Assembly (NCBI RefSeq): GCF_000737315.1
Contig: NZ_JMCB01000019.1
Span: 124,001 to 188,000, forward strand
Direction of reading: 5' to 3'
Source of the DNA: Hyalangium minutum
GTDB taxonomy: Bacteria > Myxococcota > Myxococcia > Myxococcales > Myxococcaceae
Length of the DNA stretch: 64,000 bases
Shown here: in pieces, positions 24,268 to 55,588 of the stretch
Layout of the letters: each line of letters opens with the position of its first letter
Numbering within the stretch: position 1 is the first letter of the stretch
The notes under the pieces: model-generated
Told to the model about the DNA's origin: nothing
Databases searched by the model: none
Seen by the model: only the letters and a program-made list of their open reading frames with translations
Made by a program: the position numbers and the translations under genes

Positions 24268-25245
24268 TTAGAAGAGCGCGAGTTGCTGCGGCTTGCTCCC
24301 GAGCGCCCGGGCGTCGATGCCCTGCTCCCGGAGGAGCTGCGCCAGCTCTTCCTTGAAGCCGTGGTGGGTGATGACCTCGCGAGCCCCTGTGTCCTTCACG
24401 TACTTCACCAGCGAGGGGCAGTCCGCGTGGTCCGACACCGGGAACGCCACCTGCGCCCCGTAGCGGTACGCCGCACCCGGGTCCAGCGCCCAGCCCGTCA
24501 GCACCGCCGTCGCCCGAGGCCACAGCCCCGACAGCCCGCCTCCGCGCGCCAGGTGCGGCGGGAAGAAGAGCACCTCGCCCGGCTCGACCTTGCCGTCGAA
24601 GCGCCGCAGCCGCTCGATGGTGACTCCCAGCTCCGTGTAGAGCTGTGCCATCTCGAAGATGGACGCGTGCGCCACCAGCGAGAGGCCCTTGCCCGCGAGG
24701 TACTTCATCGCCTCCTGGCTCTTGCCCAGCGGGTAGCCGAGCAGCACCGGCACCGTGCCCCGCTCCAGCTGCTGGCGCACCCACGCCTCCACCTTCGCCA
24801 GCACCTCGTCCTTCGGAGGGAACCGATAGCGCGGATGGCCGAACGTGGCCTCGATGACGAGCGTGTCGCACTCGGCCACCTGCACGGGCTCGGCCGTGAG
24901 CGAGGGCACCACGTTCAGGTCCCCCGTGTAGACGATGCGCTTGCCGTCCGAGCGGATGACCCGGATCTGCGCGCTGCCCAGGATGTGCCCCGCGGGCAGC
25001 AGCTCCAGCGTCAGGGAGCCCAGCTCGAAGATCTGGTTGAACGGCACCGCCAGCGGCGCGCCCACAGGCCCCAGCCGGTGCGTCATGAAGCGCAGCGTGG
25101 CCGCCGTGGAGATGGTGGCCTCGTGCCGAGCGATGTGGTCCGTGTGGCCGTGGCTGACGAAGGACAGCGGACTCTTGCGTGTCGCGTCCAGCGACAGCGG
25201 GGTCCCTGTCAGGTGCAGTCCGTTTCGCCTCAGCTCGACGCTCAT
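24268..25245 (-). CDS. MBL/beta-CASP nuclease (ligase-associated DNA-damage exonuclease-like)
   Basis: SHGHTDH, PAGHILGS, YTGD, EATFG, YPLGKSQ, SDHAD. Confidence 0.85.
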   Translation of the reverse strand: MSVELRRNGLHLTGTPLSLDATRKSPLSFVSHGHTDHIARHEATISTAATLRFMTHRLGPVGAPLAVPFNQIFELGSLTLELLPAGHILGSAQIRVIRSDGKRIVYTGDLNVVPSLTAEPVQVAECDTLVIEATFGHPRYRFPPKDEVLAKVEAWVRQQLERGTVPVLLGYPLGKSQEAMKYLAGKGLSLVAHASIFEMAQLYTELGVTIERLRRFDGKVEPGEVLFFPPHLARGGGLSGLWPRATAVLTGWALDPGAAYRYGAQVAFPVSDHADCPSLVKYVKDTGAREVITHHGFKEELAQLLREQGIDARALGSKPQQLALF

Positions 25246-25350
25246 GCGGAAGCTTTCCCTATAGCGCGCCCCGAGCCCCCTGTGTCCTTCATCTTCGCTT
25301 TCGCCCGCCCGTCGCCTCAGCACCCGGGCAGCCACCCTCCCCTGCCCTTC

Positions 25351-26256
25351 TCATTCCTGGGGAGCCTCCCTCGCGCGCCACCGCTCCCACAAGGCCGAGC
25401 CCAGCTCCGCCACCAGCACACCCAGGACAATGAGGGCCCCGCCGACCCACTCGCGAGCCCCGAGCTTCTCGTACCCCAGCGCCACCGAGAAGGCCCCCGC
25501 GAACAGGGGCTCCAACGAGTAGATGATCGCCGCGCGCACCGCGGACGTCCGAGCCTGCGCCCACGTCTGGACGCTGAGCGCCCCTGCACTGGCGAACACG
25601 CCGCAGAAGGCTACTGCCCCCAAGAAGGATGGGGTCCACTCCACCCGGGAACCCGCGAAGGGCAGGCACAGCGCGGACAGCAGCGCCACCACCCAGAGCT
25701 GTACGGCCACCAGCGCCTGCACGCCCTCCTTGGGCGCGTACCGCTCCGTGAAGCCGATGTGAAACGCGTATGCCACCGCGCACGCCAGCGTGAGCAGGTC
25801 TCCCCGCGAGAGCCCTGCCTGCCCCACGGCCGCGCCCGTGAGCAAGTAGAGCCCCACTGCCGACAGCACCACGCCCGCCAACGAGGACACCCGGGGCACC
25901 CGGCGGAACAGCGCCAGCATGACCACCGGCACCAGCAGCACGTACAGCCCGGTGAAGAACGCCGAGCGCGCGGGCGTGGTGTCCGTCAGCCCCACCGTCT
26001 GCAGCGCGAAGCCCCCGAACAGAAAGAGGCCTAGCACCGTGCCGCGGCGCAGGGTGGCCGGAACGAACAGCCGCCGTCCCGCCACCCCACTGAGCACAAA
26101 GGCCCCCACGCCGAACCGCAGCGTGAGGAAGACGAACGGATCACCGTAGCTCAGCGCATCCTTCACCACCACGAAGGTGGTGCCCCACAACACCGTGAGG
26201 AGTACCAGCGCGCCATCCGCCCGGAGACGGGCCTGGTGCTCCTCCGTGGCCTGCAT
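25351..26256 (-). CDS. DMT/EamA-family transporter
   Basis: Two EamA repeats: LWGTTFVVVK...RF and YSLEPLF. Confidence 0.9.
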   Translation of the reverse strand: MQATEEHQARLRADGALVLLTVLWGTTFVVVKDALSYGDPFVFLTLRFGVGAFVLSGVAGRRLFVPATLRRGTVLGLFLFGGFALQTVGLTDTTPARSAFFTGLYVLLVPVVMLALFRRVPRVSSLAGVVLSAVGLYLLTGAAVGQAGLSRGDLLTLACAVAYAFHIGFTERYAPKEGVQALVAVQLWVVALLSALCLPFAGSRVEWTPSFLGAVAFCGVFASAGALSVQTWAQARTSAVRAAIIYSLEPLFAGAFSVALGYEKLGAREWVGGALIVLGVLVAELGSALWERWRAREAPQE

Positions 26257-26514: not shown

Positions 26515-27480
26515 CTAACTGACGGAGCGCTCCAGGACCACCAGGGGCTTACCTCCCCCCGAGGCTCGCCACTCCGCGTTGACCCGCCGAGTGAGCTCCG
26601 CCGAGGAATCTTGGAAGCCGGCCCGTTTGAAGGTCCGCTGCGAGGCGAAGTTGTCCTCGTCGATGTCCGCGAAGATGCGCTCAGCGCCTTGCCTCCGGGC
26701 CTCCTCCAGCAGCACCTGAAGCATCCGGTACGCCACCCCCATCCTCCGAGCCCGAGGTGCCACCACCAGCGAACGCACCCAGAGCCCCTCCAGCGCCAGT
26801 CCCTCCTCGCGGTAGTCGTCCAGGTAAGCAAAGCCGCATAGCCGTCCCTGTGCGTCGAATGCCCCCGCCGCCGCCCCCCGCGAGCCGTCCGCCCGGCCCC
26901 ATCGGCCCAAAAGTTGCTGCCTCAAGAAACCCGAAGGCACCAGCAGCCGCTCTCCCGCGAAGACGAGCAATGCGTCGAGATCCTCTTCCCGTAGCAGCCG
27001 GACCTCGAGCCGTCCCAGCAAGCGCTGCCGCAGTGGCCGTGACCAACCCGCCACGGTGAAGTCCCGGAGGCGGCGGAACCATGTCCGCGCCCGAGGCCGA
27101 GCCCACAGCCCAGCGAGCACCCGCTGTCCCAGGAAAAACGTGGGACGGATGAGCCGGGGCAGCGGGAGAAGCAAGCCTCCCCGCCGCAGCGCCGTGACAC
27201 GCCCGAGTGGCTCGCCCACGGGATCCTTGCCGCCCAGCAGCGGCGCCGTCAGGAAGGGCGAGGCCGAGATCACCACGTGCGCCAGGAGCTTGCGCCCCAC
27301 CCGGACGAGCGCGACATCGCCCCGGGCCAGCTCCGCCGGCGCACAGCGCAGCACCCGGACAGAGTCCCCGCTGCGCAGGAGCGGATACAGGCTGCGGCCA
27401 GCGCCCCGCACCCACAGCTCTTGGCCAGGGGGCGTCGCTTCGATGAGATCCAGGAGATCGGCGGGGCGCCTACGGCTCAT
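26515..27480 (-). CDS. S24/S26-like peptidase domain fused to a GNAT acetyltransferase
   Basis: N-terminal GRSLYPLLRSGD...GDVALV...LAHVV; C-terminal VRSLVVAPRARRMGVA...DNFASQRTFKRAGF. Confidence 0.75.
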   Translation of the reverse strand: MSRRRPADLLDLIEATPPGQELWVRGAGRSLYPLLRSGDSVRVLRCAPAELARGDVALVRVGRKLLAHVVISASPFLTAPLLGGKDPVGEPLGRVTALRRGGLLLPLPRLIRPTFFLGQRVLAGLWARPRARTWFRRLRDFTVAGWSRPLRQRLLGRLEVRLLREEDLDALLVFAGERLLVPSGFLRQQLLGRWGRADGSRGAAAGAFDAQGRLCGFAYLDDYREEGLALEGLWVRSLVVAPRARRMGVAYRMLQVLLEEARRQGAERIFADIDEDNFASQRTFKRAGFQDSSAELTRRVNAEWRASGGGKPLVVLERSVS

Positions 27481-28225
27481 CCAGCCACCTCTTCACGAAA
27501 GCCGCCGCGGCCTCGTCCTTGCGGAAAACGAACCGCCTCAGACGAACACCCTCGGTGATGCGGGCCAGGCGCTGGAGAATGTCTCCAGACGAAGCCTCCC
27601 CAGGGAGCGGCCGGAACACCTGTCCCATCAGCGCCGCGATGGCCTCCTGGGCGGAGACCTCCTCCATCCGTTCCTCAGGGCCCTTGGCCAGCAACAGCAC
27701 CGCGGCCAGTCGCGCACGAGCCAGCGACGAGGGCAGATCCAGCTCCGAGCAGAACGGGCTGCCCTCCACTCGCCCGCCCGGATAGAGGGCCACCACCTCG
27801 TCCGAGAGCACGTCGGCCTGAGCGGCCCGGGCGCACAGCCTCGTGAAGGTGGACTTGCCGGCCCCGCTCGGGCCCACGGCCACCACGCCGCTCCCCTGGA
27901 AGGCCACGGCCGCCGCGTGCAGCAGCAGGCCGCCCTGCCGGAGCGTCGCGAGCTGCATCCCCACGCGCAGCGCCAGCTCTGTGTCGAGTTCGGCTTGGGG
28001 CAGCTCCACGCGCACCCGCTCCCCCTCTACCCGGAAGCGGGGCCCGGAGGGATGGCGCGGATCCAGCGGTGTCCCCTGCCCCTCGGCGAGCGCCCCCCCC
28101 TGCAGCACCAGGCGAAGCGGCTCCTCGGCCGTGGCACGAAAGGGCTCCAACGTGCACCGTGCACCCGCCTGGGTCAGGAGGACTTCATCCACGCCCACGC
28201 TCCAGTCCCCGAAACGCAGCCGCAT
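27470..28225 (-). CDS. HprK-related P-loop kinase (stand-alone kinase domain)
   Basis: LLLHAAAV...GPSGAGKSTF...VLSDE, the HPr kinase-like H / Walker A / DE pattern. Confidence 0.8.
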   Translation of the reverse strand: MRLRFGDWSVGVDEVLLTQAGARCTLEPFRATAEEPLRLVLQGGALAEGQGTPLDPRHPSGPRFRVEGERVRVELPQAELDTELALRVGMQLATLRQGGLLLHAAAVAFQGSGVVAVGPSGAGKSTFTRLCARAAQADVLSDEVVALYPGGRVEGSPFCSELDLPSSLARARLAAVLLLAKGPEERMEEVSAQEAIAALMGQVFRPLPGEASSGDILQRLARITEGVRLRRFVFRKDEAAAAFVKRWLDEP

Positions 28226-28236: not shown

Positions 28237-28380
28237 CTACAAGCAGTTCGGGGGGTTCTCGGGATCCACGAAGCAGCTCGGCTGGAAGAGATCAGGCACG
28301 AGAAGCCGCTCCGAGCGCACCTGAGGTGGCACGTAAGGCTTCTTCTTCTTGCCGGCCGGAGCCGCCTGCGCCGTGGTCAT
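28237..28380 (-). CDS. Putative RiPP precursor peptide, 47 aa (not in ORF track): MTTAQAAPAGKKKKPYVPPQVRSERLLVPDLFQPSCFVDPENPPNCL
   Basis: Manual translation from ATG 28380 to TAG 28237. It fills the gap between two co-oriented genes (9 and 11 nt spacers) and has a KKPYxxPxV motif. Confidence 0.8.
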   Translation of the reverse strand: MTTAQAAPAGKKKKPYVPPQVRSERLLVPDLFQPSCFVDPENPPNCL

Positions 28381-28389: not shown

Positions 28390-31300
28390 CTAATAATACA
28401 CCACGACACGGGCGGGAACCGACGTATCGTCACCGATGGCCAAGTCCAGCTTTCCGTCGCCATTGAAGTCCAAGATGGCCACGCTGATCCCGAGCGAGCT
28501 GTTGGACTCCAGCTTGGACTGGGAGAAGCCGTTCTCCTGGGCCGGATCGAACTCCGCTCCCGCGACACCGCGATTGTAGAAGATGGAGGCGGCGCCGCCC
28601 GGACGGAGGTTCTGCCCGATAGCGAGATCCACGAGGCCGTCCCCATTGAGGTCACCTCGCGCCATGGCGGAGCCGAAGCGTCCGCCTCCCGTGATGAGCA
28701 GCGGCGGAGTCGTGAAGCCAGAGGCGCTCCCGTCCCGGTAGACGAACACCTTGCTCTCGGACGCCATGGTCACCGCGAGATCCAGCGCGGAGCCACCGGC
28801 CAGATCCACCCCTCCCACGGCCTCGGTACCGAAGCCGTTGGTCGCGCTACCACCCGTAGAGGAAGGCTGGTTGAGCACCTGCACGGCGTCGGACAAGGAG
28901 ACGGCGGTCCCGGGCAAGGAGCGGACGGTGGCGCCCGAGTACACGTAGACCTTGTTCTGGGACTCGTGGGACGAGGGGATCGTGAAGTCCGGCACCCCAT
29001 CCCCTGTGATGTCTCCGAGCCGGACATAGCCGCGGTTGCGCCCGAAGAAGAGGGTGCCTGCGGGCGCGGTGAAGATTTTGTCCGCTCGGCTCGACGGGAC
29101 GACGCAGGGGGCGGAGGTGTTGCAGCTCGTGCCCAGCGCGCGCCACGCGTCCTGCGAGCGCCCGTAGAAGAGGTATGCCTTGGGGGGACTCTCACCGTGC
29201 GAGCTGAGGATCAGTTCCTGCAGCCCGTCCCCGGTGATGTCGCCGATCATCTTCACGGTGCCGCCGAGAGAGGCGTTCGCGATGCTGGAAGCGTGGCGGA
29301 ACTCAATGGGACTCGCGGTGTCCACCGTGGTGCCCCGGCGGCCGAAGAAGAGGAAGGCGCGGCCGCTGGTGCCCGAGTAAGCCCGCCCACCGACCAGCAG
29401 ATCCTGCACGACATCCGTCGCGGAGTTGCCCACGTCGCCCACGTCGAAGTCCGCGCCATCGAACTGGTTGCCCTGCGGCAGCGTGATGTCCTGGCGGTTC
29501 TCGACCTGCGGGTTGGCTGAGCCGTAATAGACGTGAGTGATGCCCGGCGTGCTGGACGAAGCGCCTACCACCAGATCATCGAAGCCGTCCGCGTTGAGGT
29601 CGCCACGCGCGATGATGTTCAGCCCGAAGCTGTTGCCACCGGCGCCCGGGTTGAGGAACTCCTTGGGCGTGGGAATGTTGTTGAGCTGCTGCGGGGCCTG
29701 GAACGGCGGGTAGTTGCCCACCTCGTCGCTCGGGCGGACGAGGATGAAGTAGTTGGCCAGCGGGGGCAGCGTCAGCGTGTAGCTGGTGGCCGTGGAGGGC
29801 AGCAGCGCGCCGGTCTCCTGCTTGACCCGGGAGCCAAAGTACTCAGTGTCATTGGAGAAGCCCGTCCGGAGTTGGGAGTTGATGGTCCACCGTAGATCGT
29901 AGCCTGCGGGCACGCCGGACACGCCGTCGTCTCCGCTGGCCGTCCATGTCACGTTCACCCGGGCCGCGCGCTCCTGCCCCGCGACCAGGACCGCCGTCAT
30001 GGTGGAGGCCTGCGGAGGGATGACATCCACCGTCGCCGCCACGGTGTGGCGCGCCACGTTGCCGGAGTCCTCCTGGACGCGGATCTCGAGAGTGCCCGTG
30101 GTGGCATGAGGCAGCGTGACCGGGAGCTCCACTCGCGGGGGGAGTCCTCCCTCCGCGGGATCGGGCTCAGGGACGATGAGCTCCGGCGAGACCGGGTTGC
30201 CCCGGTAGAAGGCCTGCACTCTGCTGCCCACGCCCTGGTCTACCCGGAGGGTGAAGATCGCGTTGGCGTCACCGCCCGGCGAGCCGTCCACCACCCGGTC
30301 CGGCGCGGGCGTCGGGTACAGGTAGCGGTTGGTGCTGGCTACGAAATAGAGCGTCGTGGGAGCCGGGGAGATGGAGGTGATGACGGGCGGGGTGATGTCC
30401 ACCGTCACATCCACCGAGTCCTCCGTGGCCAGGTTGGAGAGGTTGATGACCTGCACCCGGAACTGCGTGGCCTCCCCGTCCTGGAGCGTCACGTCGAAGG
30501 AGAAGCCGCCCGTCGTTGCATCGGCGGTGGCGGTGGCCTCGGCGGTGGCCGAGGTGGCGCCGCGGAAGAGCGACACCGTGCGTCCGCGGCATTCCTGGGT
30601 GGTGCCGCGCAGGCGGTACTGCAAGCCGGGCGTCCCCGGATCCAGATCATCCCCGGCCAGCAGCTTCACCACTGCCGCGGACGGAGTGGTGAGGGTGATG
30701 TCGCAGCCCGCCTGGCGGACGTCGACATTCGCCGCCGAGGCCGTGGCCGCGTTGCCCGCCGGATCGCTGGCCTGGGCGATGACCGTCCAGACGCCCACGC
30801 GGAAGTTGAGCGTGCCCTGCGCCACACCCGAGGACACCTGAAGATCGCCGATCACCTCTTGGGTGCTCGTGTCCGTTCCCACCTGAGAGAGGATGTGGAC
30901 CGTACTCACGTCATCTGCGGTCACGTTCACCCGGACGGGGACGCTCGTGCTGTCGTAGACCGTGTTCGCCGTGGGCGAAATCAGGTCCAGCACGGGGACA
31001 TCGAGATCGACGGTGAGGGTGCGCACCACCGGCGCGCTGACGTTGCCCGAGGAGTCCACGGCGGTGGCGGTGAGCGTGTACGTCGCCTTGCCGGTACCGG
31101 GCAGGGTGAAGTCATACGCCGCCTCCAGCGCGGAGGGCGACAGATCAACGGCCTCGCCCGTGGGGGAGAGCTCCAGGTGAATGCCGTTGCCCTCGACGTC
31201 CGCGTCCGTGTTGACCTTCACCCGGAGCTGGAAGCCCGCCGCGGAGGAGGCGTCATGAGCTACGCCGAGCGACGTCCGCGTGGGCTCGACGATGCGCACT

Positions 31301-34215
31301 CCGGGCTTCACCGGGTCCATGCGGAACGCGAAGAAGGCTGCCGTGTTGATCGGGTAGAACGTCGTGGGGTTGGACAGCCGGTTCTGGTTGCCCGCGGCGT
31401 CCGTCACCGTGACGACGAGGGAATAGTCCGACGTGATGCCCTGCGGCATGGAGGAGAGCGTGACGGTGGCCTGGCCCGCGGTGGCAGTGGCCTGGCCGTA
31501 GACGATGTTCATGTTGGCGCGGTCTCGCACCTGGACCGGGCGTCCATCCTCTAGGCCATCGATGGCGACGCGCAGCTGCGGCGGACCCGTGCGGAGCTCC
31601 GCCTCGTTCATGCGCAAGTCGCCGTTGTCTCCGAGCAGTTCCACCGTCCGCACCGCCGGCTCCAAGCTGTCCACCGTGAGGGAGATCTCCCGGGACGTCG
31701 AGATGGCGCCATCATCGAGCACGGCCTTCAGGGCGTACTGCCCATCGGGGTAGGTGAAGTTCGGCGTCAGCCTGGGAACGTTCGTGGCCAGGGTGAACCA
31801 GCCCGAGCCATCCCGGCAGGGCGCGGCCCCCGCGACGAGGGCCACGCTCGTGCAGATGTCCACGACGGCATTGGGCGAGCGGTCGGGGACGTTGTACTGG
31901 AGCGCGGCCTGGATGCCGCTCTGCTCCGGGGCTGCGTCCAGACTGGCCTTATAGGTCGCAGGGGAAGTCGCGGGCAGCTCCAGGGTGATGTTCCCGGGCT
32001 GGGTGTCCACCAGCAACAGCACCGTGGCGCAGGCCACCGTCCCGCCGGGGCCAGTGAGCTCGGCGCGAAGCACATTGGCGCCCTCCTCCAGCGCCACGCT
32101 GGTGAACTCCTTCTCTCGGTCGCTCGCTGCCACGGGCATGGAGGCAAGCTCCGTCGTGCCGCGGAGCAGCCGCAGCGTCCCCGCCGCCGAGGGCGTCATC
32201 GACAGGCGCACCGTCACGAGCAGCCCTCCGCCTGTCCTGGGAGCCCCATCCGCGTTGCTCAGGTAGCGGCCCGCCGCCGGAGACTCGAACTGCAGCGAGC
32301 TGCCAGCGAAGGCCAGCGTCAGGTTCCGGCTCACGGACTGGGTGTTCCCCGCCACATCCGTCGCGGTCACCTGCAGGGTGCACGTGCCGGAGATCGGCAC
32401 GGAGACATCCCTCAAGAGTAGGTTGCCGCTGGCGTCCGCGGTGCCCGCCGCGCCCACCGCAGTGCCGCAACCGGTGGCCAGCACCGAGGCCCCCGGCTCC
32501 GTGCTCACATCGAGAGAGATCTGCATGCCCGGGCTCACCGAGGTGTCGTTCAGCTCGGAGCCCAGGGTCGTCTGCTCCGCAGGCACCCCATGCACGTTGA
32601 AGCTCAGCACCGGGGGCGTGGCGTCCACCCCCAAGGCGAGAGACTGGCTCGTGCCGCCTCCAGGGCAGGAGGCCACCAGGCGGTACTCGCCGTCCCCAGT
32701 GAGCGGCAGCGAGATCTGCGCTGTCCCCGAGGAAGCCGTCCCGGAAGCGCGGCCCTTCTCCACGCGGTTCTGGTCATACGCCACCACGGTGACGGGACCG
32801 TTGCCCGACTCCACGCGCACCGAGAGGGGCGAGGTGCGCGCCATGGCGCCCTCCAACGGGGAGACGATGCCGCAGAGGGGCCGCCCTGTGGAGACGGTAA
32901 CGCTCTCCGCCGCGCACCGCTCGATGCCCGCAGCATTGCGCACACAGGCCTGCACGGTGTTGGCGCCCTCGGCGAGCTGGGCCGTGAAGGAGGCCTCCTT
33001 GAAGTTGCCCGAGGCCACCGTCACCGCCCGCTGGGGGCGCGCGAACTGGCCGCTCACGGAGGTGAACAACCGCACTTCGGAGCCCACGGGCAGCGAGTCC
33101 GCCTGCACGGTCACGGGCGCCTGCACGCCCTCGAGCCCCGGATCCGCGTCCGAGGAGATGGTCCGCTGCACCACGAGCCGCATGGTGGGCGCGGTGCTCG
33201 CGACGGTGACGGGGATCTGCCGCGTGGTGATGTTGCCGCCCGCATCCGCCAGGCGCAGGGTGAAGGTGTAGTTCCCATCCGCCGGAACGGTGACCGCGGG
33301 GAACGACACGTTCCCAGCATCCACCGGCGTGGAGAGCTCCGTGGCTCCGGGACGCGACAGGGTGGCTGTCACTCCCGGCTCGGTACAGCCCACGGTGGCG
33401 TCGATCCGGAACGTCGTGGAGGCCACGGGCCCCACCGGCGACACCACCTCCACGCGCGGCGCCACCGTGTCCAGCTGGATGTTGCGCTTGCCGGACGTCA
33501 CCTCCTTGTCGCCATTGCGGACCACCGCGTAGCAGGCGGCCTGCTCAGCCTCGCACGCGGATTGCGCGAGCGTCACCGACACCTGCGTGAGCCCGCTGCT
33601 GTTCACCGTGAAGTCCGTGGGGGGCACGCCGCAGGCCTGCTCGCAGTAGAGCGTGCCCGTCTTCCCGGCCAGCCCCACGCTCTTCACGGAGAAGTGGAGC
33701 TGGTAGCCCGCCGTGTCCGGATCCGCGTCATCCGCCTCGCGGAGCACCTGGCCCTCGGCGGGCTGCGTCAGATCCACGCTCGGCGGCTCGGTGGACACCG
33801 TGACGGTGATGCGCTGGGTGGCCGTGCGGTGCGAGCCCGCCTCTTCCACCGTCACTTGCAGCAGGTTGGTGCGCGGCTGAAGCACCGTGCCGGGGAAGCG
33901 CACCGTGCCGCCCTCGATGACCGCCGGGGGCCCCGCCGTCCACGTCTGCTCGCTGGGCGTGCGCACCTCCAGCTTGGCGCTGACCAGCGTCACCGCCCGG
34001 CCCGCCGTGTCGCTCGCCGACGCCACCACCTCGTACTGGAAGCCGTCCGTGGCCGGATCCACGTCGTCCGACAGCGTCAGCCGCTGTCCGTCCTTGGGCG
34101 TGTCGAAGGCCACCGCGAGCTCGGACTCGACGGGCGGCTCTCCGCAGTTGCAGCCCGTGGCGCCCCACACCAGGACCAGGCTCAGCAGCAGCCCTTGCGA
34201 TACCGATCGGCGCAT
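28390..34215 (-). CDS. Giant surface lipoprotein, 1941 aa: Ig-like repeats, FnIII-like domain and C-terminal FG-GAP/VCBS propeller
   Basis: Lipobox WGATGC at Cys22; repeated D-x-x-x-P domain boundaries (DTVAP, DATPP, DITPP, DVIPP); GDLNADGFDD, GDITGDG, GDLNGDGLVD and DFNGDGKLD repeats. Confidence 0.88.
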   Translation of the reverse strand: MRRSVSQGLLLSLVLVWGATGCNCGEPPVESELAVAFDTPKDGQRLTLSDDVDPATDGFQYEVVASASDTAGRAVTLVSAKLEVRTPSEQTWTAGPPAVIEGGTVRFPGTVLQPRTNLLQVTVEEAGSHRTATQRITVTVSTEPPSVDLTQPAEGQVLREADDADPDTAGYQLHFSVKSVGLAGKTGTLYCEQACGVPPTDFTVNSSGLTQVSVTLAQSACEAEQAACYAVVRNGDKEVTSGKRNIQLDTVAPRVEVVSPVGPVASTTFRIDATVGCTEPGVTATLSRPGATELSTPVDAGNVSFPAVTVPADGNYTFTLRLADAGGNITTRQIPVTVASTAPTMRLVVQRTISSDADPGLEGVQAPVTVQADSLPVGSEVRLFTSVSGQFARPQRAVTVASGNFKEASFTAQLAEGANTVQACVRNAAGIERCAAESVTVSTGRPLCGIVSPLEGAMARTSPLSVRVESGNGPVTVVAYDQNRVEKGRASGTASSGTAQISLPLTGDGEYRLVASCPGGGTSQSLALGVDATPPVLSFNVHGVPAEQTTLGSELNDTSVSPGMQISLDVSTEPGASVLATGCGTAVGAAGTADASGNLLLRDVSVPISGTCTLQVTATDVAGNTQSVSRNLTLAFAGSSLQFESPAAGRYLSNADGAPRTGGGLLVTVRLSMTPSAAGTLRLLRGTTELASMPVAASDREKEFTSVALEEGANVLRAELTGPGGTVACATVLLLVDTQPGNITLELPATSPATYKASLDAAPEQSGIQAALQYNVPDRSPNAVVDICTSVALVAGAAPCRDGSGWFTLATNVPRLTPNFTYPDGQYALKAVLDDGAISTSREISLTVDSLEPAVRTVELLGDNGDLRMNEAELRTGPPQLRVAIDGLEDGRPVQVRDRANMNIVYGQATATAGQATVTLSSMPQGITSDYSLVVTVTDAAGNQNRLSNPTTFYPINTAAFFAFRMDPVKPGVRIVEPTRTSLGVAHDASSAAGFQLRVKVNTDADVEGNGIHLELSPTGEAVDLSPSALEAAYDFTLPGTGKATYTLTATAVDSSGNVSAPVVRTLTVDLDVPVLDLISPTANTVYDSTSVPVRVNVTADDVSTVHILSQVGTDTSTQEVIGDLQVSSGVAQGTLNFRVGVWTVIAQASDPAGNAATASAANVDVRQAGCDITLTTPSAAVVKLLAGDDLDPGTPGLQYRLRGTTQECRGRTVSLFRGATSATAEATATADATTGGFSFDVTLQDGEATQFRVQVINLSNLATEDSVDVTVDITPPVITSISPAPTTLYFVASTNRYLYPTPAPDRVVDGSPGGDANAIFTLRVDQGVGSRVQAFYRGNPVSPELIVPEPDPAEGGLPPRVELPVTLPHATTGTLEIRVQEDSGNVARHTVAATVDVIPPQASTMTAVLVAGQERAARVNVTWTASGDDGVSGVPAGYDLRWTINSQLRTGFSNDTEYFGSRVKQETGALLPSTATSYTLTLPPLANYFILVRPSDEVGNYPPFQAPQQLNNIPTPKEFLNPGAGGNSFGLNIIARGDLNADGFDDLVVGASSSTPGITHVYYGSANPQVENRQDITLPQGNQFDGADFDVGDVGNSATDVVQDLLVGGRAYSGTSGRAFLFFGRRGTTVDTASPIEFRHASSIANASLGGTVKMIGDITGDGLQELILSSHGESPPKAYLFYGRSQDAWRALGTSCNTSAPCVVPSSRADKIFTAPAGTLFFGRNRGYVRLGDITGDGVPDFTIPSSHESQNKVYVYSGATVRSLPGTAVSLSDAVQVLNQPSSTGGSATNGFGTEAVGGVDLAGGSALDLAVTMASESKVFVYRDGSASGFTTPPLLITGGGRFGSAMARGDLNGDGLVDLAIGQNLRPGGAASIFYNRGVAGAEFDPAQENGFSQSKLESNSSLGISVAILDFNGDGKLDLAIGDDTSVPARVVVYY

Positions 34216-34280: not shown

Positions 34281-34652
34281 TCACGGCCCGAGTACCAGCA
34301 CCTTTTTCTCTACGAGGAGTCTTACGAAGGCGGCCGTGTCCTCCCGGCATGCCTGCGGCTCCACCTCGAACTCGTCACACAGCACCGCCACGATGTCCGC
34401 CACCGTCCGCCGTCCGTCCACCAGTTCCAGGATGCGCTCGGCCACCTCGGACACCCGCCCCTGTGCATCCTCGAACGTGTGCAGGAACTCGTCTGGCCCG
34501 GCCGCCATGAGCCTTCCCGACACGCGCTGCAGGCCCGCCTCCGGGTGCAGCCGGGGGATGGCGCGTAGCACGTCCTGGCTCGCGCTCGCGAGCCGCTCGA
34601 ATTCCTTCCCTCCGGCCAGGGGCCCTCCCGGGCTCACGAAGTGTGCAGCCAT
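34281..34652 (-). CDS. PqqD-family RiPP recognition element (RRE) protein
   Basis: SEVAERILELVDGRRTVADIVAVLCDEFEVEPQACREDTAAFVRLLVEKKVL, a typical PqqD winged helix. ATG at 34652. Confidence 0.88.
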   Translation of the reverse strand: MAAHFVSPGGPLAGGKEFERLASASQDVLRAIPRLHPEAGLQRVSGRLMAAGPDEFLHTFEDAQGRVSEVAERILELVDGRRTVADIVAVLCDEFEVEPQACREDTAAFVRLLVEKKVLVLGP

Positions 34653-42123: not shown

Positions 42124-43941
42124 CTACGCCGCCGCTATTCTCAGCGGCGTGTCACGCCCCAGGGCGATGAAAGGCGCCCAGCTGTGGGGGTGGGGATGGC
42201 TTTGGCGCACCAGACGCATCGCCGCCTGCAATGCGCTGCAGCGGCCCTGCCCCTCCCGCAGAAAACCGTAATACGCCTCCATCAGCGTCCGGGTCGTCTC
42301 ATCGTTCACCTTCCACAGACTCGTCACCACGGTCTCCGCTCCCGCGATGATGAAGGCCCGGCGCAGCCCGTACACACCCTGTCCCAGCTTGACCTCGCCG
42401 CGTCCGGTGTCGCACGCGGAGAGCACCACCAACTGCGTGCCCCAAAGGTTCATCCCCGCCAGTTCCAGCGCCGTCACCCAGCAGTTGTCGGCAGGGGCCG
42501 GGTCCGAGGAAGAGGCCAGCGCCAACGCCGAGCACAACAACGGATCGGAGGGGCGTGGTGCACAGGCATCCGTTCCCAGTACTCCGAAGTGAACCATGGC
42601 GCGCTGGACCGCGAGCCCAGGAGACGGATCCCCCTGGAAGGAGCCATGGGTGGCCAGGTGCAGCACTCCGGGCGCGGAGAGGCTCAGCAGCCGCTCCTTG
42701 GTCGCCTCCGGTCCCAGGAAGAGCTGGGCCTGCGGCAACAAGCGCTGGATGGCCTCGGCCTCCCGGCGGGTGCCCGGCAGCGGCACGCACGTCCGCTGCG
42801 CCACGTTGTGCGAGGAGGACTCGCTCACCGCCGGCGCTTCCGCGCAGAAGTCCTCCTGCCCAGAGCCGCTGAAACCCGGGTCCGCCAGCACGACCACCGA
42901 GCGGGAGACAGGCACGTCCTCCACCCGAGGCAACAGCTCCTTGCCGGAGGTGAGATAGATGAAGTCGAAGGAGTCGATGAGGAACTGGCTCCCATCGTGC
43001 AACGCGGCGAACGGCACGAAGGAGAGCTGGCCATCCGTGGACAGGAAGAGGCGCCGGACTCCTCTCACCAGCGCATGGATGGGCTGAAAGGCCAGCTCAT
43101 ACAGCTGCTGGGCCATGCCCAGGTAGGCGGCATCCCGGTTGGCCAGGGCGTTGCGCAGTTCCGAGGCAGCCTTGTCGATGAACTCGGCCCAGCCCAGATC
43201 CACGACGCTCACGCGGGCATCCGGGAAGAGGACAAGCGCCAGGTAGCGGAGCCGCGCGGTGTTCCGCGACTCGGAAGTGTCAGGCTGAGGCCCGAACGGA
43301 GGCTCCCGGTATGCCACCAGCTCGACGAGGGCGCCGTCTCGCGGGAGGGCCGCGGCGACCTGCTCGATGATGTGCTCGGCGGAAGGCAGCGCGGCGCGGG
43401 CGCGCAGCGGCGCCGAGCGCCGGGCCAGCTCGGCCTCGAGCGCCTCCCCTTGCGCGGCAAGCGACTGGAGACGCTGCTGGTAGTCCGCGGGGGACTGCCA
43501 GCCCACGCGCTGGTTCGCCAGGGTGGAGAGCTCCTCGCGCAGCGCACACAGCCGCGCGAAGGCCTCGCAGGCCCGCGCGCCCAGGCGCTGGTAGATGGCC
43601 TGGGAGGTGTCAGCGGCCTCATCGAGGGCGCGGCCCTTGAGCAGCAGCACGGCCGCGAGCGCCAAGCGCTGCACGCGCACGTCCTCCGGGTGAGCGCGCA
43701 ACAGCGCGTAGAGGCGCTCCTCGCCAGCGCGGAGACGTTGGAGAAAGCGGGCCAGCCGGGACGTGGAGAACGCGAGCGCTTCCTGGCGCAGTCGCTGCTC
43801 GGACAAGGTGAAGGCGCGCCAGAGCAAGACCAGCGCATCGTCCAGACGCGCCTGAGCCAGACACAACTCAGCCATGTCGTACAGCTTCTCCGCGATCAGC
43901 GGATCGCGGACGCTTCCCCCGAGAACTGGCAGCATGTCCAT
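42124..43941 (-). CDS. CHAT (caspase-like) protease with a short TPR-like N-terminus
   Basis: Catalytic HLATHG and LSACDTG; GVYGLRRAF; TSLWKV; WAPF. Confidence 0.88.
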   Translation of the reverse strand: MDMLPVLGGSVRDPLIAEKLYDMAELCLAQARLDDALVLLWRAFTLSEQRLRQEALAFSTSRLARFLQRLRAGEERLYALLRAHPEDVRVQRLALAAVLLLKGRALDEAADTSQAIYQRLGARACEAFARLCALREELSTLANQRVGWQSPADYQQRLQSLAAQGEALEAELARRSAPLRARAALPSAEHIIEQVAAALPRDGALVELVAYREPPFGPQPDTSESRNTARLRYLALVLFPDARVSVVDLGWAEFIDKAASELRNALANRDAAYLGMAQQLYELAFQPIHALVRGVRRLFLSTDGQLSFVPFAALHDGSQFLIDSFDFIYLTSGKELLPRVEDVPVSRSVVVLADPGFSGSGQEDFCAEAPAVSESSSHNVAQRTCVPLPGTRREAEAIQRLLPQAQLFLGPEATKERLLSLSAPGVLHLATHGSFQGDPSPGLAVQRAMVHFGVLGTDACAPRPSDPLLCSALALASSSDPAPADNCWVTALELAGMNLWGTQLVVLSACDTGRGEVKLGQGVYGLRRAFIIAGAETVVTSLWKVNDETTRTLMEAYYGFLREGQGRCSALQAAMRLVRQSHPHPHSWAPFIALGRDTPLRIAAA

Positions 43942-44010
43942 CTCCAGCGGGCCCCCATGTACTTGCCCGCTGAGAAGAAGAGACTGCCGCGTTCAGAATC
44001 ATTCAAGAAT

Positions 44011-47000
44011 TCAGCGGCCACCCCTGGCACAGACACGCACCCCCGTGAGCAGGTCGCTCTGTGTGGGATCGCCCGCAGTGTGATTCGCCATATTGGCGGA
44101 GTACACGTCGTAGTACCAAGCCCCTCCTCGAAGGGAGATCGAGCCCCGCTCGGGCGTCACGGAGCGGGTGAGCTCGAAGGCATTGCCCACGGTGTCCACC
44201 AACCCGAAGGGGCTGGTCGAGTTCGGGTGCGAGCCCACCATGTCAGGCCCGTAATCCAAGGGAATCCGGCCATAGGTGGTGTCGATGTTTGCGTCGTCCG
44301 GCAACAGCACCTCTCCATGAGGGAAGCTGCGGCCGTCCACGCCGCGCGCCGCGTACTCCCACTCCAGCGCGGTGCACAGGCGCGCCCCGGGCAGGCGCCC
44401 CGTACCGTCCAGCCACGAGAAGTAGTCCTCGAGATCCCTGACCGAGATGCCCGTCAGCGGAAACCGCCGCCAATCCGCGGTGGAGCGCCGGGTCCTCGTG
44501 GGGTAGCGGAAGAGCTCGCCCTCCGCCGCCGTGGAGACCTTCTGGCTCGAATGATGGAAGGAGAAGCTCCAGCCGCCGCCAGGCGTCTTGCGCAGCACCA
44601 CCGCGCGACCCTTGTCATTGAAGCGCGCCTGCGCGAGGAGCTGCCTCGCGGAGTGCCCCGGTGGAAGGGAGTCGAGGTACATCAACCAGTCGCCGAACGT
44701 CACTTCCGTCCGCCCGATGAAGTACCCCTGGGTCAGGCAGACCCGGTGCATCGGCGGACTGGTCATGGCCACCCTCAACACCTCGGGATCGGCACTCCCC
44801 TGGAGGAAGCATCCGGGCGGAACGTACACATAGCCCTCGGGGATGGAGGCGGGCAGGTCCACGAGGAGCTGCTCCCCGGCCCCGTGGGACAGGAGCACGA
44901 GCAGCTCCACGGGCGCGGAGCTGGGGTGCGTGATGCGCAGCTGGTAGGAGCCCTCGGGCAGGCGCAGGCCCCGCAGTGGGGTCAGGCCCCAGGTGCCCGC
45001 TTCCGGAACCCGCTCCAGCCGCTCCCCCTCCGCGCCGCGGATGGAGCGCTGGATCGTCACGGTGGCTCCCGGAGGCTCCGTCACCAGCTCGAGCTCGGCG
45101 GGAGCCTGGAATCGCTCCCACCACCGCCGCGCCTCACTCGAGACCTCGGCCATCCGCTCCAGGCTCTGCACCCGCTCCTCGCGCTCACGCTGCTGGTGGA
45201 AGCGCTCCGCCAGGAGAATTCGCTCGTAGGTGACTTCCGCCAGCAGCTCCCGCGTTTCCGGGTTCCCCCTGTCACGCTCCAGCGCCCTCTCGAGCTCCCG
45301 GCTGGCGCGAGCATAATCGCGCTCAGCCTGGTCCCTCAGCGCCAGCGCCCTGGCCCATTTTCCCTCGTCGGAGTCCTGGAGGGGATCAGGCCCCGGAGAG
45401 CCCCGCCCGTCGAACAGCGCGAGCGCCTCCTCGCGGAGGTCACCGGCCTGCCGGGCAAGGCCGCGCCCCGTGGCGAACGCTTCCAGCGCCAGCCCTTGGT
45501 GCGTGGCGATGAAGCGTGTGTCCTCGCGGTACGTCTGTAGGCGGAGCCCAGCATAGACCGCGGCGAGGGCCAGCACGACAGCCAGCGCGGCCACCCAGCG
45601 TCCCCACCGCTGGCGCACCACCACACGGCGGGAGGCGGCCAGGAAGGAGCGCTCCCGAAGCCCCAAGGTGGAAGGATCGAGCAGGCTCGCCTCGGCCAAC
45701 TGGCGCTGTCCCCAGAGCACCTCCCGGGCCCCTCCCAGCCGCTCCCAGTCGGCGCTCGCGTCCTCGAGCCGCTTGCGCACCACCCGGTGGCCAATGTCGC
45801 CATCCAGCCAATCGCGCAGGGTGCCCCACCCTTCGATCAGCGAGTCATGCGCGATCTCCCAGCGGGCCTCGCCGCCCACGGTGCGCATGTGCAGCAGACG
45901 GCCCTCGACGAGCGCGCGAAGCGCGGCGCGGGCGCTCTCCTCCGAGCTTCCCAGGAGATCCTCCTCGCCTCGCTCGACCCGCGTGCCCTCGGCCGTGACC
46001 AACCTCAAGAGCAGCCCCCGCGCCGCCGCGCGCCCAGCCGGCCGCAGGCGCAGGAGCACCCCATCGGCATGCCGAGACAGCGCTCCGGCCACTCCTCCCA
46101 TCTGCTCGAGCGCCGCCTGGGTGATGCAGCCTCGCGCGGCGTCGCGCCGCTCCCACAACTCGGCGAGCGCGAACTGCAGAAGGGGCAGATTCCCCATGCC
46201 CCGGGCCATGGAGGCCATGAGCACCTGGATGAGCGCCTCGGACTCGAACGCCACACCGCGGCGGCGGGCGGGACCGATGATGGCCTCGCGCACCCCCTCG
46301 GGGGACAAGGGCCGCAGGAGGTAGAGCGCGCGCTCCGCCTCCTCGCCCAGGCCAGGCAGCGCGCACACCCGCGTCAGGAAATCTCCCCGCACCGCCATGA
46401 GCACACGCACACCCGCCGTCGGCAGGGACAGCTCCCCGAGGATGCGGGCGAAGTGCTCCGCCTGCGCTGGCTCCGCAATCGTGATGAGCTCCTCGATCTG
46501 ATCGATAAAGAGGAGCAGGCCGCGACCGGACCGGTATGCCTCGCGCAGCGCTCGCCCCAGCCAGGAGGGCTTGTCCTTCAGCAGCAGGACAAGCTCTTCC
46601 TCCTTGTGCCCCAGCCGGGGCGCGAGAGCGGCGGCCAGTGCCTCCAGCGGGCGCCGTCCAGGCCAGAGCGTGACCGTGACGGTCTCCCGGCCTTCCTCCA
46701 AAACTCCCGCGACCACCTGCGGCAGCACCCCCGCGCGGCACAGCGAGGACTTGCCGACACCCGAGTCTCCCGCGACGAGGACCAGAGGCTGATAGCGGAG
46801 CCGGTCCAGGACAGCGTGAATGTCTGCATCGCGTCCGAAGAAGAGAGCCCGGTGCTCGGCCTCGAAGGGCTCCAGCCCTCGGTAGGGATTGCCAGCAGCC
46901 AGGGGCACGGGCGCGACAATTCGCGTCAGGCGCTCCAGCGCCTCGCAGAGCGCCTCGGCCGAGGCGAAGCGCTCCCGCGCATCCGCCGCGCAGCACCGGT

Positions 47001-47937
47001 CGATGAGGGCGGCGAAGTCCGGATCGATGAACGGCGCACGTCCGGAGGGAGGAGGCTCTGGCGTTGCCGTCCGGGAAGGGCGTGGCGGCACGCCGGTGCA
47101 CAGCTCGCGAAGCACGAGCCCCAGGGCGTAGATGTCGCTGCGCGCGGTCGCCGCCGCCCCTTCAAGGAGCTCGGAAGCCATATAGGCCACCGTGCCCGCG
47201 ACGACGCGTCCGCCAGAAGAGGCTCCGTCCGGCGCCTGCTCGAGCTGCTCGGCCAGGCCAAAGTCGAGCAGCTTCACCTCGCCGCTCTCAGTGAGCACGG
47301 CGTTGGACGGCTTGAGATCGCGGTGGAGCACGCCCCGGCGGTGCGCCGCCGCGAGCCCTCGGGCCAGTCCCAGCCCCAGGCCCAGCGCCTGGCGCCAGGG
47401 AATGGGCAGCGGCAGCTCCGCGAGGCTGCTGCCGGTGATGTACTCCGAGACGATATAGGGGTGTCCCTCCACCTCGCCCGTGCTGAACACCTGGACGACG
47501 TTGGGGTGCTGTATCTGGGCGACGATGCGTGCTTCGTTCTCGAAGTACTTCTGGACGGTGGGCTGGGGACGCAGGTCGGCGATGAACTTCAGCGCCACAT
47601 GCCGGTCCAGCGAGGTGTCATACGCCAGGTAGACCACGCCCATGCCGCCGCGCCCGAGCGGACGCTCCAGGCGGAACTCGTTGCACACGTGAGGGGGGGT
47701 CCAGGTCGCCCCATCCTCCTTGGCCGGCTCCGGTTCGGAGGTCCCACGCGGAGAGCCCAGCCTGGGCGGAGGGGAGTCTGGCGGTGCGAGCTCCACCAGC
47801 AGGAGTCTGCACTCATGACACCGTGCGGCGTGATGGTGGGCGTGGGACAGTTCCTCGTCGGGCAACTCACCGGCGCTGAGCGCCATGAGGACGTCATCCG
47901 TCAGGCAGGGCGATGAAGACATAGACATGTCGCTCAA
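44011..47937 (-). CDS. ZAS-finger Ser/Thr kinase - nSTAND1 NTPase - TM - PEGA - FGE/SUMF1 multidomain protein
   Basis: HxxxCxxC at the N-terminus; GRGGMG, HRDLKPSN, DFGLA; PYRGLEPF...GDSGVGKSS, FIDQIEE; TEPPGATV; FYIGRTEVT, EWEYAARG, GNAFE, RGGAW. Confidence 0.88.
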   Translation of the reverse strand: MSDMSMSSSPCLTDDVLMALSAGELPDEELSHAHHHAARCHECRLLLVELAPPDSPPPRLGSPRGTSEPEPAKEDGATWTPPHVCNEFRLERPLGRGGMGVVYLAYDTSLDRHVALKFIADLRPQPTVQKYFENEARIVAQIQHPNVVQVFSTGEVEGHPYIVSEYITGSSLAELPLPIPWRQALGLGLGLARGLAAAHRRGVLHRDLKPSNAVLTESGEVKLLDFGLAEQLEQAPDGASSGGRVVAGTVAYMASELLEGAAATARSDIYALGLVLRELCTGVPPRPSRTATPEPPPSGRAPFIDPDFAALIDRCCAADARERFASAEALCEALERLTRIVAPVPLAAGNPYRGLEPFEAEHRALFFGRDADIHAVLDRLRYQPLVLVAGDSGVGKSSLCRAGVLPQVVAGVLEEGRETVTVTLWPGRRPLEALAAALAPRLGHKEEELVLLLKDKPSWLGRALREAYRSGRGLLLFIDQIEELITIAEPAQAEHFARILGELSLPTAGVRVLMAVRGDFLTRVCALPGLGEEAERALYLLRPLSPEGVREAIIGPARRRGVAFESEALIQVLMASMARGMGNLPLLQFALAELWERRDAARGCITQAALEQMGGVAGALSRHADGVLLRLRPAGRAAARGLLLRLVTAEGTRVERGEEDLLGSSEESARAALRALVEGRLLHMRTVGGEARWEIAHDSLIEGWGTLRDWLDGDIGHRVVRKRLEDASADWERLGGAREVLWGQRQLAEASLLDPSTLGLRERSFLAASRRVVVRQRWGRWVAALAVVLALAAVYAGLRLQTYREDTRFIATHQGLALEAFATGRGLARQAGDLREEALALFDGRGSPGPDPLQDSDEGKWARALALRDQAERDYARASRELERALERDRGNPETRELLAEVTYERILLAERFHQQREREERVQSLERMAEVSSEARRWWERFQAPAELELVTEPPGATVTIQRSIRGAEGERLERVPEAGTWGLTPLRGLRLPEGSYQLRITHPSSAPVELLVLLSHGAGEQLLVDLPASIPEGYVYVPPGCFLQGSADPEVLRVAMTSPPMHRVCLTQGYFIGRTEVTFGDWLMYLDSLPPGHSARQLLAQARFNDKGRAVVLRKTPGGGWSFSFHHSSQKVSTAAEGELFRYPTRTRRSTADWRRFPLTGISVRDLEDYFSWLDGTGRLPGARLCTALEWEYAARGVDGRSFPHGEVLLPDDANIDTTYGRIPLDYGPDMVGSHPNSTSPFGLVDTVGNAFELTRSVTPERGSISLRGGAWYYDVYSANMANHTAGDPTQSDLLTGVRVCARGGR

Positions 47938-48011
47938 AGCCTCTCAAACGACGGGGTACCCGGCGCTGGCTCGATTGCGAGCATCGCAAGGGACATGGTA
48001 CAGCCAGGAGA

Positions 48012-48941: not shown

Positions 48942-48959
48942 CCTCCCGGGGCCTCGCCC

Positions 48960-50042: not shown

Positions 50043-50207
50043 GGTGCTCTCTCCGGTGAAGTCACGTCGGTGGGGCCTGAACCGGCCCTCACGGGTACAG
50101 AGCCAGTGTCGGCCCGAATCATTCAGAAAAACGGACGGGGTCCAGCGCTCGCCTCCTGCACCCATGAGAGAATGAGAGCTCTTGGGTAGGCAGGAGGTCT
50201 CGCACAC

Positions 50208-51155: not shown

Positions 51156-51188
51156 TCTCGTGAAGCTCTCGAGCTACGGCACCGCAGG

Positions 51189-55550: not shown

Positions 55551-55588
55551 CACCGTTCATCGCACAGGAGCCAGTAGACTCCAGAGCC

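Follow-up and report, generated by a model that had tools for sequence, protein, structure and literature searches.

An open reading frame (ORF) of 47 codons, located at 28237..28380 on the minus strand of a 64,000-nucleotide stretch of Hyalangium minutum DNA (contig NZ_JMCB01000019.1, positions 124,001 to 188,000; referred to as the window), is almost certainly a real gene. Its product is probably the precursor, that is, the substrate, of an uncharacterised peptide-maturation system restricted to Myxococcota, which would resemble the pathways of ribosomally synthesised peptides that are modified after translation (RiPPs), though not those of lasso peptides, and would depend on a RiPP recognition element (RRE). 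Read along the minus strand, the gene order is PqqD-family protein, lipoprotein, peptide, ScmC-family P-loop protein, fusion of a peptidase with a GNAT domain, EamA-family transporter, and MBL-fold protein (Table 1). An initial annotation, made from the sequence alone, had proposed a hidden precursor peptide at this place, and the ORF was present exactly as described, from ATG to TAG; translation of the plus strand resulted in an unrelated frame. The attribute "hidden" fits the ORF track of the window, in which the gene was not flagged, but several NCBI genomes, among them those of Hyalangium, Stigmatella, Archangium, Pyxidicoccus, and Corallococcus sp. M34, list orthologues under the name "hypothetical protein".

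The peptide gene and its family

Since the window has a G+C content of 68% and is rich in spurious short ORFs, 47 open codons alone are no evidence of a gene, and the comparative data have to decide. A scan of a genome collection resulted in eight loci in genomes and metagenome-assembled genomes of Hyalangium, Archangiaceae, and Myxococcaceae. In all eight of these close loci the peptide ORF was unbroken, with ATG and stop, in the same slot, and it was likewise unbroken in the distant loci L009, L014/L015, L020, L021, L022, and L024, which amounts to 15 related loci in total. Within a conserved block of 22 codons, synonymous differences far exceeded non-synonymous ones (pS of 0.35–0.75 versus pN of 0.06–0.38), a pattern indicating that the gene is under purifying selection, and the G+C content at the three codon positions (0.64/0.47/0.83) followed the profile of the neighbouring genes. 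A single-sequence protein search with the peptide yielded ten homologues, and a profile search about 90 clusters at 90% identity with lengths of 40–63 aa, all of them unnamed or called "hypothetical protein" and every taxon-labelled one from Myxococcota. Comparison of the peptide with Pfam and NCBIfam gave no family match, and an Rfam scan of the window found nothing. A chance ORF in the spacer of a high-G+C genome would agree with the missing Pfam/NCBIfam family and with the many short ORFs of the window, but this explanation is already refuted by the conserved frame, the excess of synonymous over non-synonymous differences, the gene-like codon-position G+C, and about 90 homologues with conserved start and stop, so that its probability appears negligible.

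For statistics on the family, 91 members were aligned on a conserved tyrosine. All share a layout of a variable N-terminus, two to four K/R residues, and a conserved Tyr block, with the nearly invariant leader consensus [KR]3-x-Y-x-x-P-x-V-R-[ST]-E-[RK]-x-L-V-P-D-L-F. Counted from the tyrosine, Y and P(+3) were conserved to 100%, V(+5) to 99%, R(+6) to 98% (89/91), S/T(+7) to 100% (S in 86 and T in 5 members), and E(+8) to 97% (88/91), followed by R/K at +9; the [ILVM][LV]-V-P-D-L-F block was conserved to 84–90%, with F(+16) at 90%. Behind this block, 71 distinct tails were counted among the 91 members, with lengths of 11–33 residues after the Phe. Thus, the expectation of a conserved leader and a variable core was borne out, and the homologous regions of the 15 loci contained neither interrupting stops nor a lost YxxP motif. 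The tails consisted of 18% D/E, 18% P, and only 2% K/R. DP was found at 0.76 compared with 0.24 in shuffled tails, and [DE]P[DE] at 0.62 compared with 0.07, both values being indicative only, since the sequences are related.

The number of cysteines in the tail was two in 75 members, zero in 14, and six in 2, and was never odd. Paired cysteines were mostly spaced by 8 residues (49 members), followed by 9 (14), 7 (7), 3 (3), 6 (1), and 10 (1). Thus, the C-X9-C core described for the window peptide is correct as far as C36 and C46 lie nine residues apart, but it does not extend to the family, in which spacings of 3 and 6–10 occur and 14 of 91 members lack Cys. A disulfide or thioether ring had been considered; the always even Cys count favours disulfides over thioethers and would fit disulfide formation after export, though the C36–C46 disulfide itself is only a tentative assignment. 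Lanthionine-type chemistry, i.e., elimination of a phosphorylated Ser35 followed by addition of a Cys, was rejected, as position 35 is not always S/T, 14 members are Cys-less, and no lyase or cyclase was found.

Signal peptidases prefer small residues at positions -1 and -3. Ahead of the first Cys, most members carry [TQMS]-P-S, and in the Cys-less members the Phe is followed by A-S-G, G-S-G, or A-Q-S-G, so that -1, and often -3 too, is a small residue in line with this preference. Across the family, position 35 is occupied by S, T, G, or N, which rather resembles the small residue expected at -1 of a signal-peptidase-type cleavage site. Ser23 and Ser35 are indeed the only serines of the window peptide, as had been stated, and Thr2, Thr3, and Tyr16 are further hydroxyl residues that had not been mentioned. 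The proposal that both serines are the likely targets of a kinase, should phosphorylation occur, was not supported: Ser23 corresponds to S/T in 91/91 members, even in locus L024, where no kinase-like gene was found, and position 35 varies as described. Moreover, 18 of the 91 tails, this one included, have no Ser/Thr from the first Cys onward, and a single tail (1/91) ends in Ser.

Two weak peptide matches, P0185 and P0187, were left out of the alignment because they lie in other contexts without PqqD or ScmC. At L023:4352-9017, P0185 (...KRPYRRPTVRSERILEVHL..., two Cys) stands alone; the gene beside it, on the opposite strand, encodes a WD40 beta-propeller protein of 1465 aa. This peptide may be a relative, either convergent or degenerate.

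Partner proteins and their distribution across loci

Table 1. Features of the peptide locus in the window
Feature	Position	Strand	Details
Precursor peptide gene, 47 aa	28237..28380	minus	MTTAQAAPAGKKKKPYVPPQVRSERLLVPDLFQPSCFVDPENPPNCL; ATG start, TAG stop
Conserved leader block, K12–F32	28285..28347	minus	KKKPYVPPQVRSERLLVPDLF; contains RRE-type motif Y16-x-x-P19-x-V21 and near-invariant R22-S23-E24
Hypervariable tail, Q33–L47	28240..28284	minus	Predicted cleavage Q-P-S35/C36; predicted mature peptide CFVDPENPPNCL with C36–C46 pair
PqqD-family protein, stand-alone, putative RRE	34281..34652	minus	Pfam PqqD, E 2e-13
Lipoprotein, 1941 aa, Ig-like (Big_13) repeats, C-terminal FG-GAP beta-propeller	28390..34215	minus	Pfam FG-GAP and Big_13; PDB
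ScmC-family P-loop protein (PF27840), 251 aa, putative ATP-dependent phosphotransferase	27470..28225	minus	Pfam label; fold
Fusion protein, 321 aa, peptidase domain and GNAT	26515..27480	minus	
Soluble Sec11/S26-type Ser-His-Asp peptidase domain, residues 1 to ~108, putative leader peptidase	27157..27480	minus	PDB profile
GNAT domain of the same fusion protein, putative N-acetylation of the released peptide	26515..27012	minus	Pfam Acetyltransf_1, E 5e-14
EamA-family transporter, possible exporter	25351..26256	minus	~260 bp beyond the fusion gene; Pfam EamA, E 7e-30
MBL-fold protein	24268..25335	minus	

The spacers between the lipoprotein and peptide genes and between the peptide and P-loop genes measure 9 and 11 nucleotides, respectively, and the P-loop and fusion genes overlap by 11 nucleotides. 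Overlaps of called genes were also found elsewhere, namely PqqD/lipoprotein in L024 and lipoprotein/peptide in L009 and L014, and this tight packing argues for one operon. The linkage of the PqqD gene to the peptide, suggested by the initial annotation, was thereby substantiated, the two belonging to the same conserved operon. The PqqD protein scored under the cutoff of every named NCBIfam PqqD subfamily. Two starts are conceivable for it: the ATG at 34652, which adds 27 residues without counterpart in the orthologues, and the GTG at 34571, which fits the orthologous N-terminus (M/V)..AVPRLHPEAG. The EamA transporter may belong to the system; its gene lies nearby in L001–L004, L006–L009, L020, and L021 and was not detected in L024. 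Among the Pfam-scanned ORFs of the window, no Radical_SAM domain was found in the operon or its neighbour genes.

The P-loop protein showed weak, sub-threshold NCBIfam matches to TIGR04352 and TIGR04355 (HprK-related kinase A/B; 25 bits each against a cutoff of 200) and to TIGR04249 (ScmC). A sequence-only search of the PDB with the kinase profile gave generic P-loop matches only, and it was the fold search that proved informative. An AlphaFold2 model built from 61 homologues, with a predicted local distance difference test (pLDDT) score of 96, matched ATP-dependent phosphoenolpyruvate carboxykinase (PEPCK) in Foldseek with an E value of 2e-7 (TMq 0.5–0.6), followed by HPr kinase/phosphatase with E ~1e-4. 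The protein carries GPSGAGKST, H103, and D142-E143. By its modelled fold it is thus a member of the PEPCK/HprK P-loop phosphotransferase superfamily, and since H103, the P-loop residues G118, G123, and K124, and D142 are invariant in the 61 homologues, it is probably an active ATP-using enzyme. In NCBI/UniRef, orthologues of this protein (P0017, P0025, P0030, P0035, and others) bear names such as "potassium transporter TrkH", "Aldolase", and "Hpr(Ser) kinase/phosphatase"; the TrkH name seems to be a misannotation that has been propagated for a soluble P-loop protein. Among the matches listed in a metagenome scan with the kinase alignment, at least four very distant loci (27–31% identity) had no recognisable precursor or PqqD context.

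The N-terminal domain of the fusion protein, which the initial annotation had missed, is a putative soluble Ser-His-Asp peptidase of the Sec11/SipW type (MEROPS S26B). A profile of 54 sequences, run against the PDB, matched human SEC11C (6.6e-8) and SEC11A (8.3e-8), then LexA and bacterial signal peptidase I, and the Sec11 alignment covers the SMxP, GD, HxV (AHxV in the query), and Asp boxes; a profile of eight sequences found nothing relevant. The window fusion protein on its own matched Pfam S24 only with an E value of 0.09, whereas 43 of the 54 members match Pfam Peptidase_S24 and 13 match S26. The putative nucleophile at position 30 is a serine in 48 members, a cysteine in 4, and a threonine in 2, and H68 and D86 are found in 47 and 49 of the 54, respectively. 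The family comprises about 214 representatives at 50% identity, which are either stand-alone (130–170 aa) or GNAT-fused (~230–330 aa). Unlike the Sec11 and SipW signal peptidases, with which it shares the conserved Ser, His, and Asp, the domain is small (~110 aa), lies beside a PqqD/precursor pair, and appears soluble, as no hydrophobic anchor is evident in its N-terminal sequence: MSRRRPADLLDLIEATPPGQ is hydrophilic, judged from the sequence alone, and the AlphaFold2 model (pLDDT 94.5) begins with one short helix followed by beta strands. In a fold search with the whole fusion model, GNAT matches dominated, so that it was uninformative on the N-terminal domain. The top PDB folds for the GNAT domain included the N-alpha-acetyltransferases RimI, Ard1, Naa50, and Naa60, but also other GNATs.

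The giant FG-GAP protein had likewise been overlooked as a conserved member of the system. The window protein has a signal peptide with lipobox, and the N-termini of all its orthologues are of the lipoprotein type. Common to them, even in the distant loci, are the first Ig domain and the C-terminal ~600 aa (fn3 and a propeller of the seven-blade type formed by FG-GAP repeats), and the Ig repeats differ in number. For the propeller region, the PDB search gave integrin alpha chains as matches.

In the eight close loci, the whole stretch from the ETF to the MBL gene is syntenic with the same gene order, a finding of little weight on its own. Locus L008, with its uneven conservation, tells more, and the distant loci more still. 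In L008, ETF, EamA, and MBL proteins are 69–94% identical compared with 40–48% for the lipoprotein, kinase-like, and S24-GNAT proteins (S24-GNAT denoting the peptidase–GNAT fusion), with PqqD at 78% and a conserved leader. Locus L009 (kinase 38% identical) contains PqqD, two Ig/FG-GAP genes, the peptide, and ScmC, and the orthologous S24-GNAT (45% identical, displaced by two genes) and EamA follow a few genes on. L014/L015 carry PqqD, an FG-GAP protein, the peptide, and ScmC, again with 38% identity of the kinase. The Archangium loci L020 and L021 have the full set with the GNAT part lost or degenerate; in L021 the peptidase domain stands alone with 145 aa. In L022, the peptide has six Cys and is accompanied by ScmC and a 145-aa peptidase domain. 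Finally, L024, a metagenome contig (L024:5138-10096), shows PqqD, an FG-GAP protein, a Cys-less 42-aa peptide, and S24-GNAT within a retained ETF...MBL neighbourhood. Overall, PqqD occurred in every related locus with upstream DNA at hand, as did the lipoprotein (all 15 loci), and ScmC in 14 of 15. The Sec11-like peptidase is adjacent or nearby in all loci apart from L014/L015, where the 2.9 kb available downstream showed none, and L005, where the contig ends, and the GNAT domain is absent in L021 and L022 of Archangium and truncated or degenerate in L020. To judge by this distribution, the invariant core is PqqD, lipoprotein, and peptide, with the GNAT domain common but dispensable. In L014 (4873-6080), ScmC is followed by genes for a 281-aa and a 119-aa protein without Pfam match; the 281-aa protein, the one of the two compared with S24-GNAT, showed no similarity to it. 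Both proteins, found in L014/L015, may be alternative partners of the system.

Proposed maturation and competing explanations

Based on these data, we propose a pathway as a whole with some confidence, while its specific steps (cleavage site, acetylation, disulfide, and partnership with the lipoprotein) range individually from unlikely to possible. In the cytoplasm, PqqD would bind the leader at Y16-x-x-P19-x-V21 and offer the peptide to its partners, and the ScmC-like enzyme would spend ATP on the peptide. The Sec11-like domain would cleave past the small residue after D-L-F, here at Q-P-S35/C36, and the fused GNAT domain would acetylate the new N-terminus. The released 12-mer CFVDPENPPNCL would be exported, its C36–C46 disulfide would close, and the mature peptide would act beyond the cytoplasm, its most likely partner being the co-encoded integrin-like lipoprotein. 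The generic gene pattern of RRE-dependent RiPPs is found here, namely a precursor with conserved leader and variable core adjoining an RRE protein, a modifying enzyme, and a protease. A bolder version, which we consider rather unlikely, is that the exported peptide, after maturation by PqqD, ScmC, and Sec11-GNAT, serves as a specific ligand or small subunit of the FG-GAP lipoprotein, forming an "integrin plus RiPP ligand" pair. If true, the hypervariable, disulfide-closed, acidic DP-rich loop would co-diversify with a fast-evolving surface protein, possible roles would include self/kin recognition or surface signalling in social myxobacteria, and this would be the first RiPP class with leader removal by a soluble homologue of Sec11-type signal peptidases.

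Several points weigh against the proposed pathway, of which every step beyond a conserved operon is inferred. The linkage evidence stems mostly from one bacterial order, and plain synteny, which also extends to ETF, Coa1, EamA, and MBL, inflates the apparent co-occurrence. The otherwise complete locus L024 has no ScmC gene, so that the kinase-like step may be dispensable or may rely on a gene elsewhere, the Archangium loci lack the GNAT domain, and the 2.9 kb that follow the kinase gene of L014 showed no S24-like gene. Furthermore, Q at -3 (QPS/C) is atypical for a signal peptidase, and an EamA transporter would be an unusual exporter for a 12-mer. Finally, the conservation of R-S-E and V-P-D-L-F exceeds the needs of a docking motif, possibly because the conserved segment is itself the substrate.

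PqqA and the mycofactocin precursor are examples in which the conserved residues are the substrate. By analogy, the central segment of our peptide might be modified, either by the ScmC-like kinase on Ser23 in V-R-S-E or by another enzyme on P-D-L-F, giving a cofactor-, signal-, or scaffold-like peptide with the variable C-terminus as follower or spacer. The strict conservation at Y+6 to Y+8 (R in 89, S/T in 91, and E in 88 of 91 members) and of V-P-D-L-F (84–90%), the 18 tails without Ser/Thr usable by a kinase, and a kinase-like protein with intact P-loop, His, and Asp agree with this explanation, but Ser23 is kept in L024, a locus without ScmC, the even Cys count and the enriched DP and [DE]P[DE] motifs suggest that the tail itself is constrained, and a dedicated Sec11-like peptidase implies that some part is removed; we therefore regard it as unlikely, although of all the competing explanations it deserves the most weight. 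Somewhat less probable still is that the small protein stays unmodified and serves the FG-GAP lipoprotein as accessory, chaperone, or regulator, in which case PqqD would merely hold the peptide and the kinase-like and peptidase/GNAT proteins would serve otherwise. For such a role speak the always tight spacing of the peptide and lipoprotein genes (9-nucleotide gap or overlap), the lipoprotein in all 15 loci with upstream DNA, and the circumstance that the pathway chemistry is deduced from gene content. However, the lipoprotein, with its signal peptide, is extracytoplasmic, whereas peptide, PqqD, ScmC, and S26-GNAT have no signal sequence, and a conserved leader with hypervariable tail, PqqD, and peptidase is the pattern of processed peptides.

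A lasso precursor, with cyclase and B2 protease encoded elsewhere in the genome, is very improbable, even though the locus resembles lasso clusters with tailoring kinases or acetyltransferases (paeninodin-type PadeK/ThcoK; albusnodin AlbT) in several respects. Lasso precursors are defined by a leader with Y-x-x-P-x-L and a penultimate Thr and by a core with N-terminal G/A/S/C and D/E at 7–9 (in part after PMC10368454). The aromatic-x-x-P-x-hydrophobic motif behind basic residues that had been read as lasso-like is indeed present, here as Y-x-x-P-x-V after lysines, a stand-alone PqqD-type RRE lies nearby, and HPr-kinase homologues and GNATs are known lasso tailoring enzymes found in such clusters (PMC8498205). 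The resemblance ends there: no Asn-synthase-like or transglutaminase-like gene was detected among the Pfam-scanned ORFs (those from ~15.4 to 40.4 kb of the window and most of its other large ORFs), and the called genes of L009, L014, L020, L021, and L024 included neither a lasso cyclase nor a B2 protease. As had been noted, the Thr at -2 is missing, and this applies to any plausible cleavage site; the tails have no consistent acidic acceptor at 7–9, the core from C36 having D4 and E6; and the NCBIfam lasso PqqD models scored far under cutoff (28.9 versus 80 and 18.7 versus 70 bits). Characterised lasso kinases phosphorylate a C-terminal Ser (PMC8498205), a precedent that is not transferable here, given the 18 of 91 tails without Ser/Thr and the single tail with a terminal Ser. 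Lasso clusters also differ in that leader removal is here apparently carried out by a Sec11-type serine peptidase in place of the transglutaminase-like B2 protease, and in the giant lipoprotein of the operon. To judge from gene content and motifs, the system is not a lasso system, and maturation of an RRE-bound precursor by the partners in Table 1 remains the preferred explanation.

Relation to known systems and further observations

The Pfam label ScmC (PF27840) paired with PqqD recalls the SynChlorMet (SCM) cassettes, which combine an HprK-like ScmC, a PqqD-like ScmD, radical-SAM/SPASM maturases, and a small peptide. Here, by contrast, no radical-SAM/SPASM maturases (ScmE, ScmF) are adjacent, the equivalogs scored far under cutoff (TIGR04249, ScmC, 18.6 versus 125 bits; TIGR04248, ScmD, 21.3 versus 100 bits), and the partners are a Sec11-like peptidase, a GNAT domain, and an FG-GAP lipoprotein. 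By these scores and neighbours, the system is not an SCM cassette (NCBIfam TIGR04248-04251). Distant ScmC homologues were, on the other hand, found in PqqD-(ScmC)-radical SAM/SPASM cassettes with a small peptide (L010:7732-10289, L011:243-2800, and L012:3329-4972). In L011 and L012, the gene after the peptide gene encodes a large protein of the Peptidase_C25 (gingipain-like) type; in L010, an unannotated gene comes next and is cut by the contig end. The cassette peptides of L010 and L012 (...RKRWEAPAIVLERSLEV... and ...KKSYERPAIIHSEKLEA...), from unrelated metagenome contigs, have the common leader K/R-x-[YW]-x-x-P-x-[IV]. The segment RKRWEAPAIVLERSL agrees with the window leader at Y/W(0), P(+3), I/V(+5), E(+8), R(+9), and L(+11), and KKSYERPAIIHSEKL agrees with it given one extra residue. 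An aromatic-x-x-P-x-hydrophobic-(x)-acidic pattern is also present in PqqA and lasso leaders. The two peptides, although only two examples, suggest that leader, PqqD, and ScmC form an old recognition module that was recombined here with other downstream partners.

Peptide-derived partners of periplasmic beta-propellers are known from QhpC, the gamma-subunit of quinohemoprotein amine dehydrogenase, and from pyrroloquinoline quinone (PQQ) with the quinoprotein dehydrogenases. There, too, dedicated enzymes or a PqqD-type chaperone take part in the cytoplasmic maturation of a small peptide, which is then exported and works with a co-encoded periplasmic propeller. In our system, a physical association of peptide and lipoprotein is speculative. 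Unlike in those cases, the propeller here is of the FG-GAP/integrin type and part of a huge lipoprotein with Ig repeats, radical-SAM and redox enzymes are missing, and the hypervariable tail argues against a cofactor.

A search of the literature resulted in nothing on the function of ScmC or SynChlorMet, no myxobacterial PqqD/HPr-kinase RiPP, nothing pertinent on FG-GAP with PqqD or S24 with PqqD, and no experiments on binding of the leader by the RRE or on a modified product. S24, S26, and signal-peptidase-type enzymes go unmentioned in a review of RiPP leader proteases from 2023 (PMC10885120), and for Citreicoccus/Corallococcus sp. M34, a carrier of one family member, the annotation "RRE-containing" has been reported (PMC8538283). 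If the proposed model holds, the peptides would constitute a new ribosomal family of about 90 sequence clusters from Archangiaceae, Myxococcaceae, and related uncultured Myxococcota. The combination of an ScmC-family kinase-like protein, a soluble Sec11-type leader peptidase, and a giant integrin-like lipoprotein is undescribed for RiPPs in the literature searched. The system would then make ScmC proteins, which also occur with radical-SAM peptide cassettes in other phyla, accessible to experiment for the first time, and it would offer a tractable processed peptide genetically tied to a cell-surface beta-propeller. Pipelines of the antiSMASH type would label the locus at best "RRE-containing", and the NCBI name of the kinase-like protein is "potassium transporter TrkH".

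Elsewhere in the window, the region at ~48000..57000 has a lower G+C content of 0.585–0.695 compared with ~0.68 overall and 0.68–0.73 in the flanks, with few ORFs showing the usual codon-position profile, and may be an acquired island. At 42124..47943 on the minus strand, a gene for a 1310-aa protein with Ser/Thr kinase, nSTAND1 NTPase, and FGE-sulfatase domains is followed by one for a 622-aa CHAT-domain (caspase-like) protein, which together look like a STAND/CHAT conflict or signalling pair.

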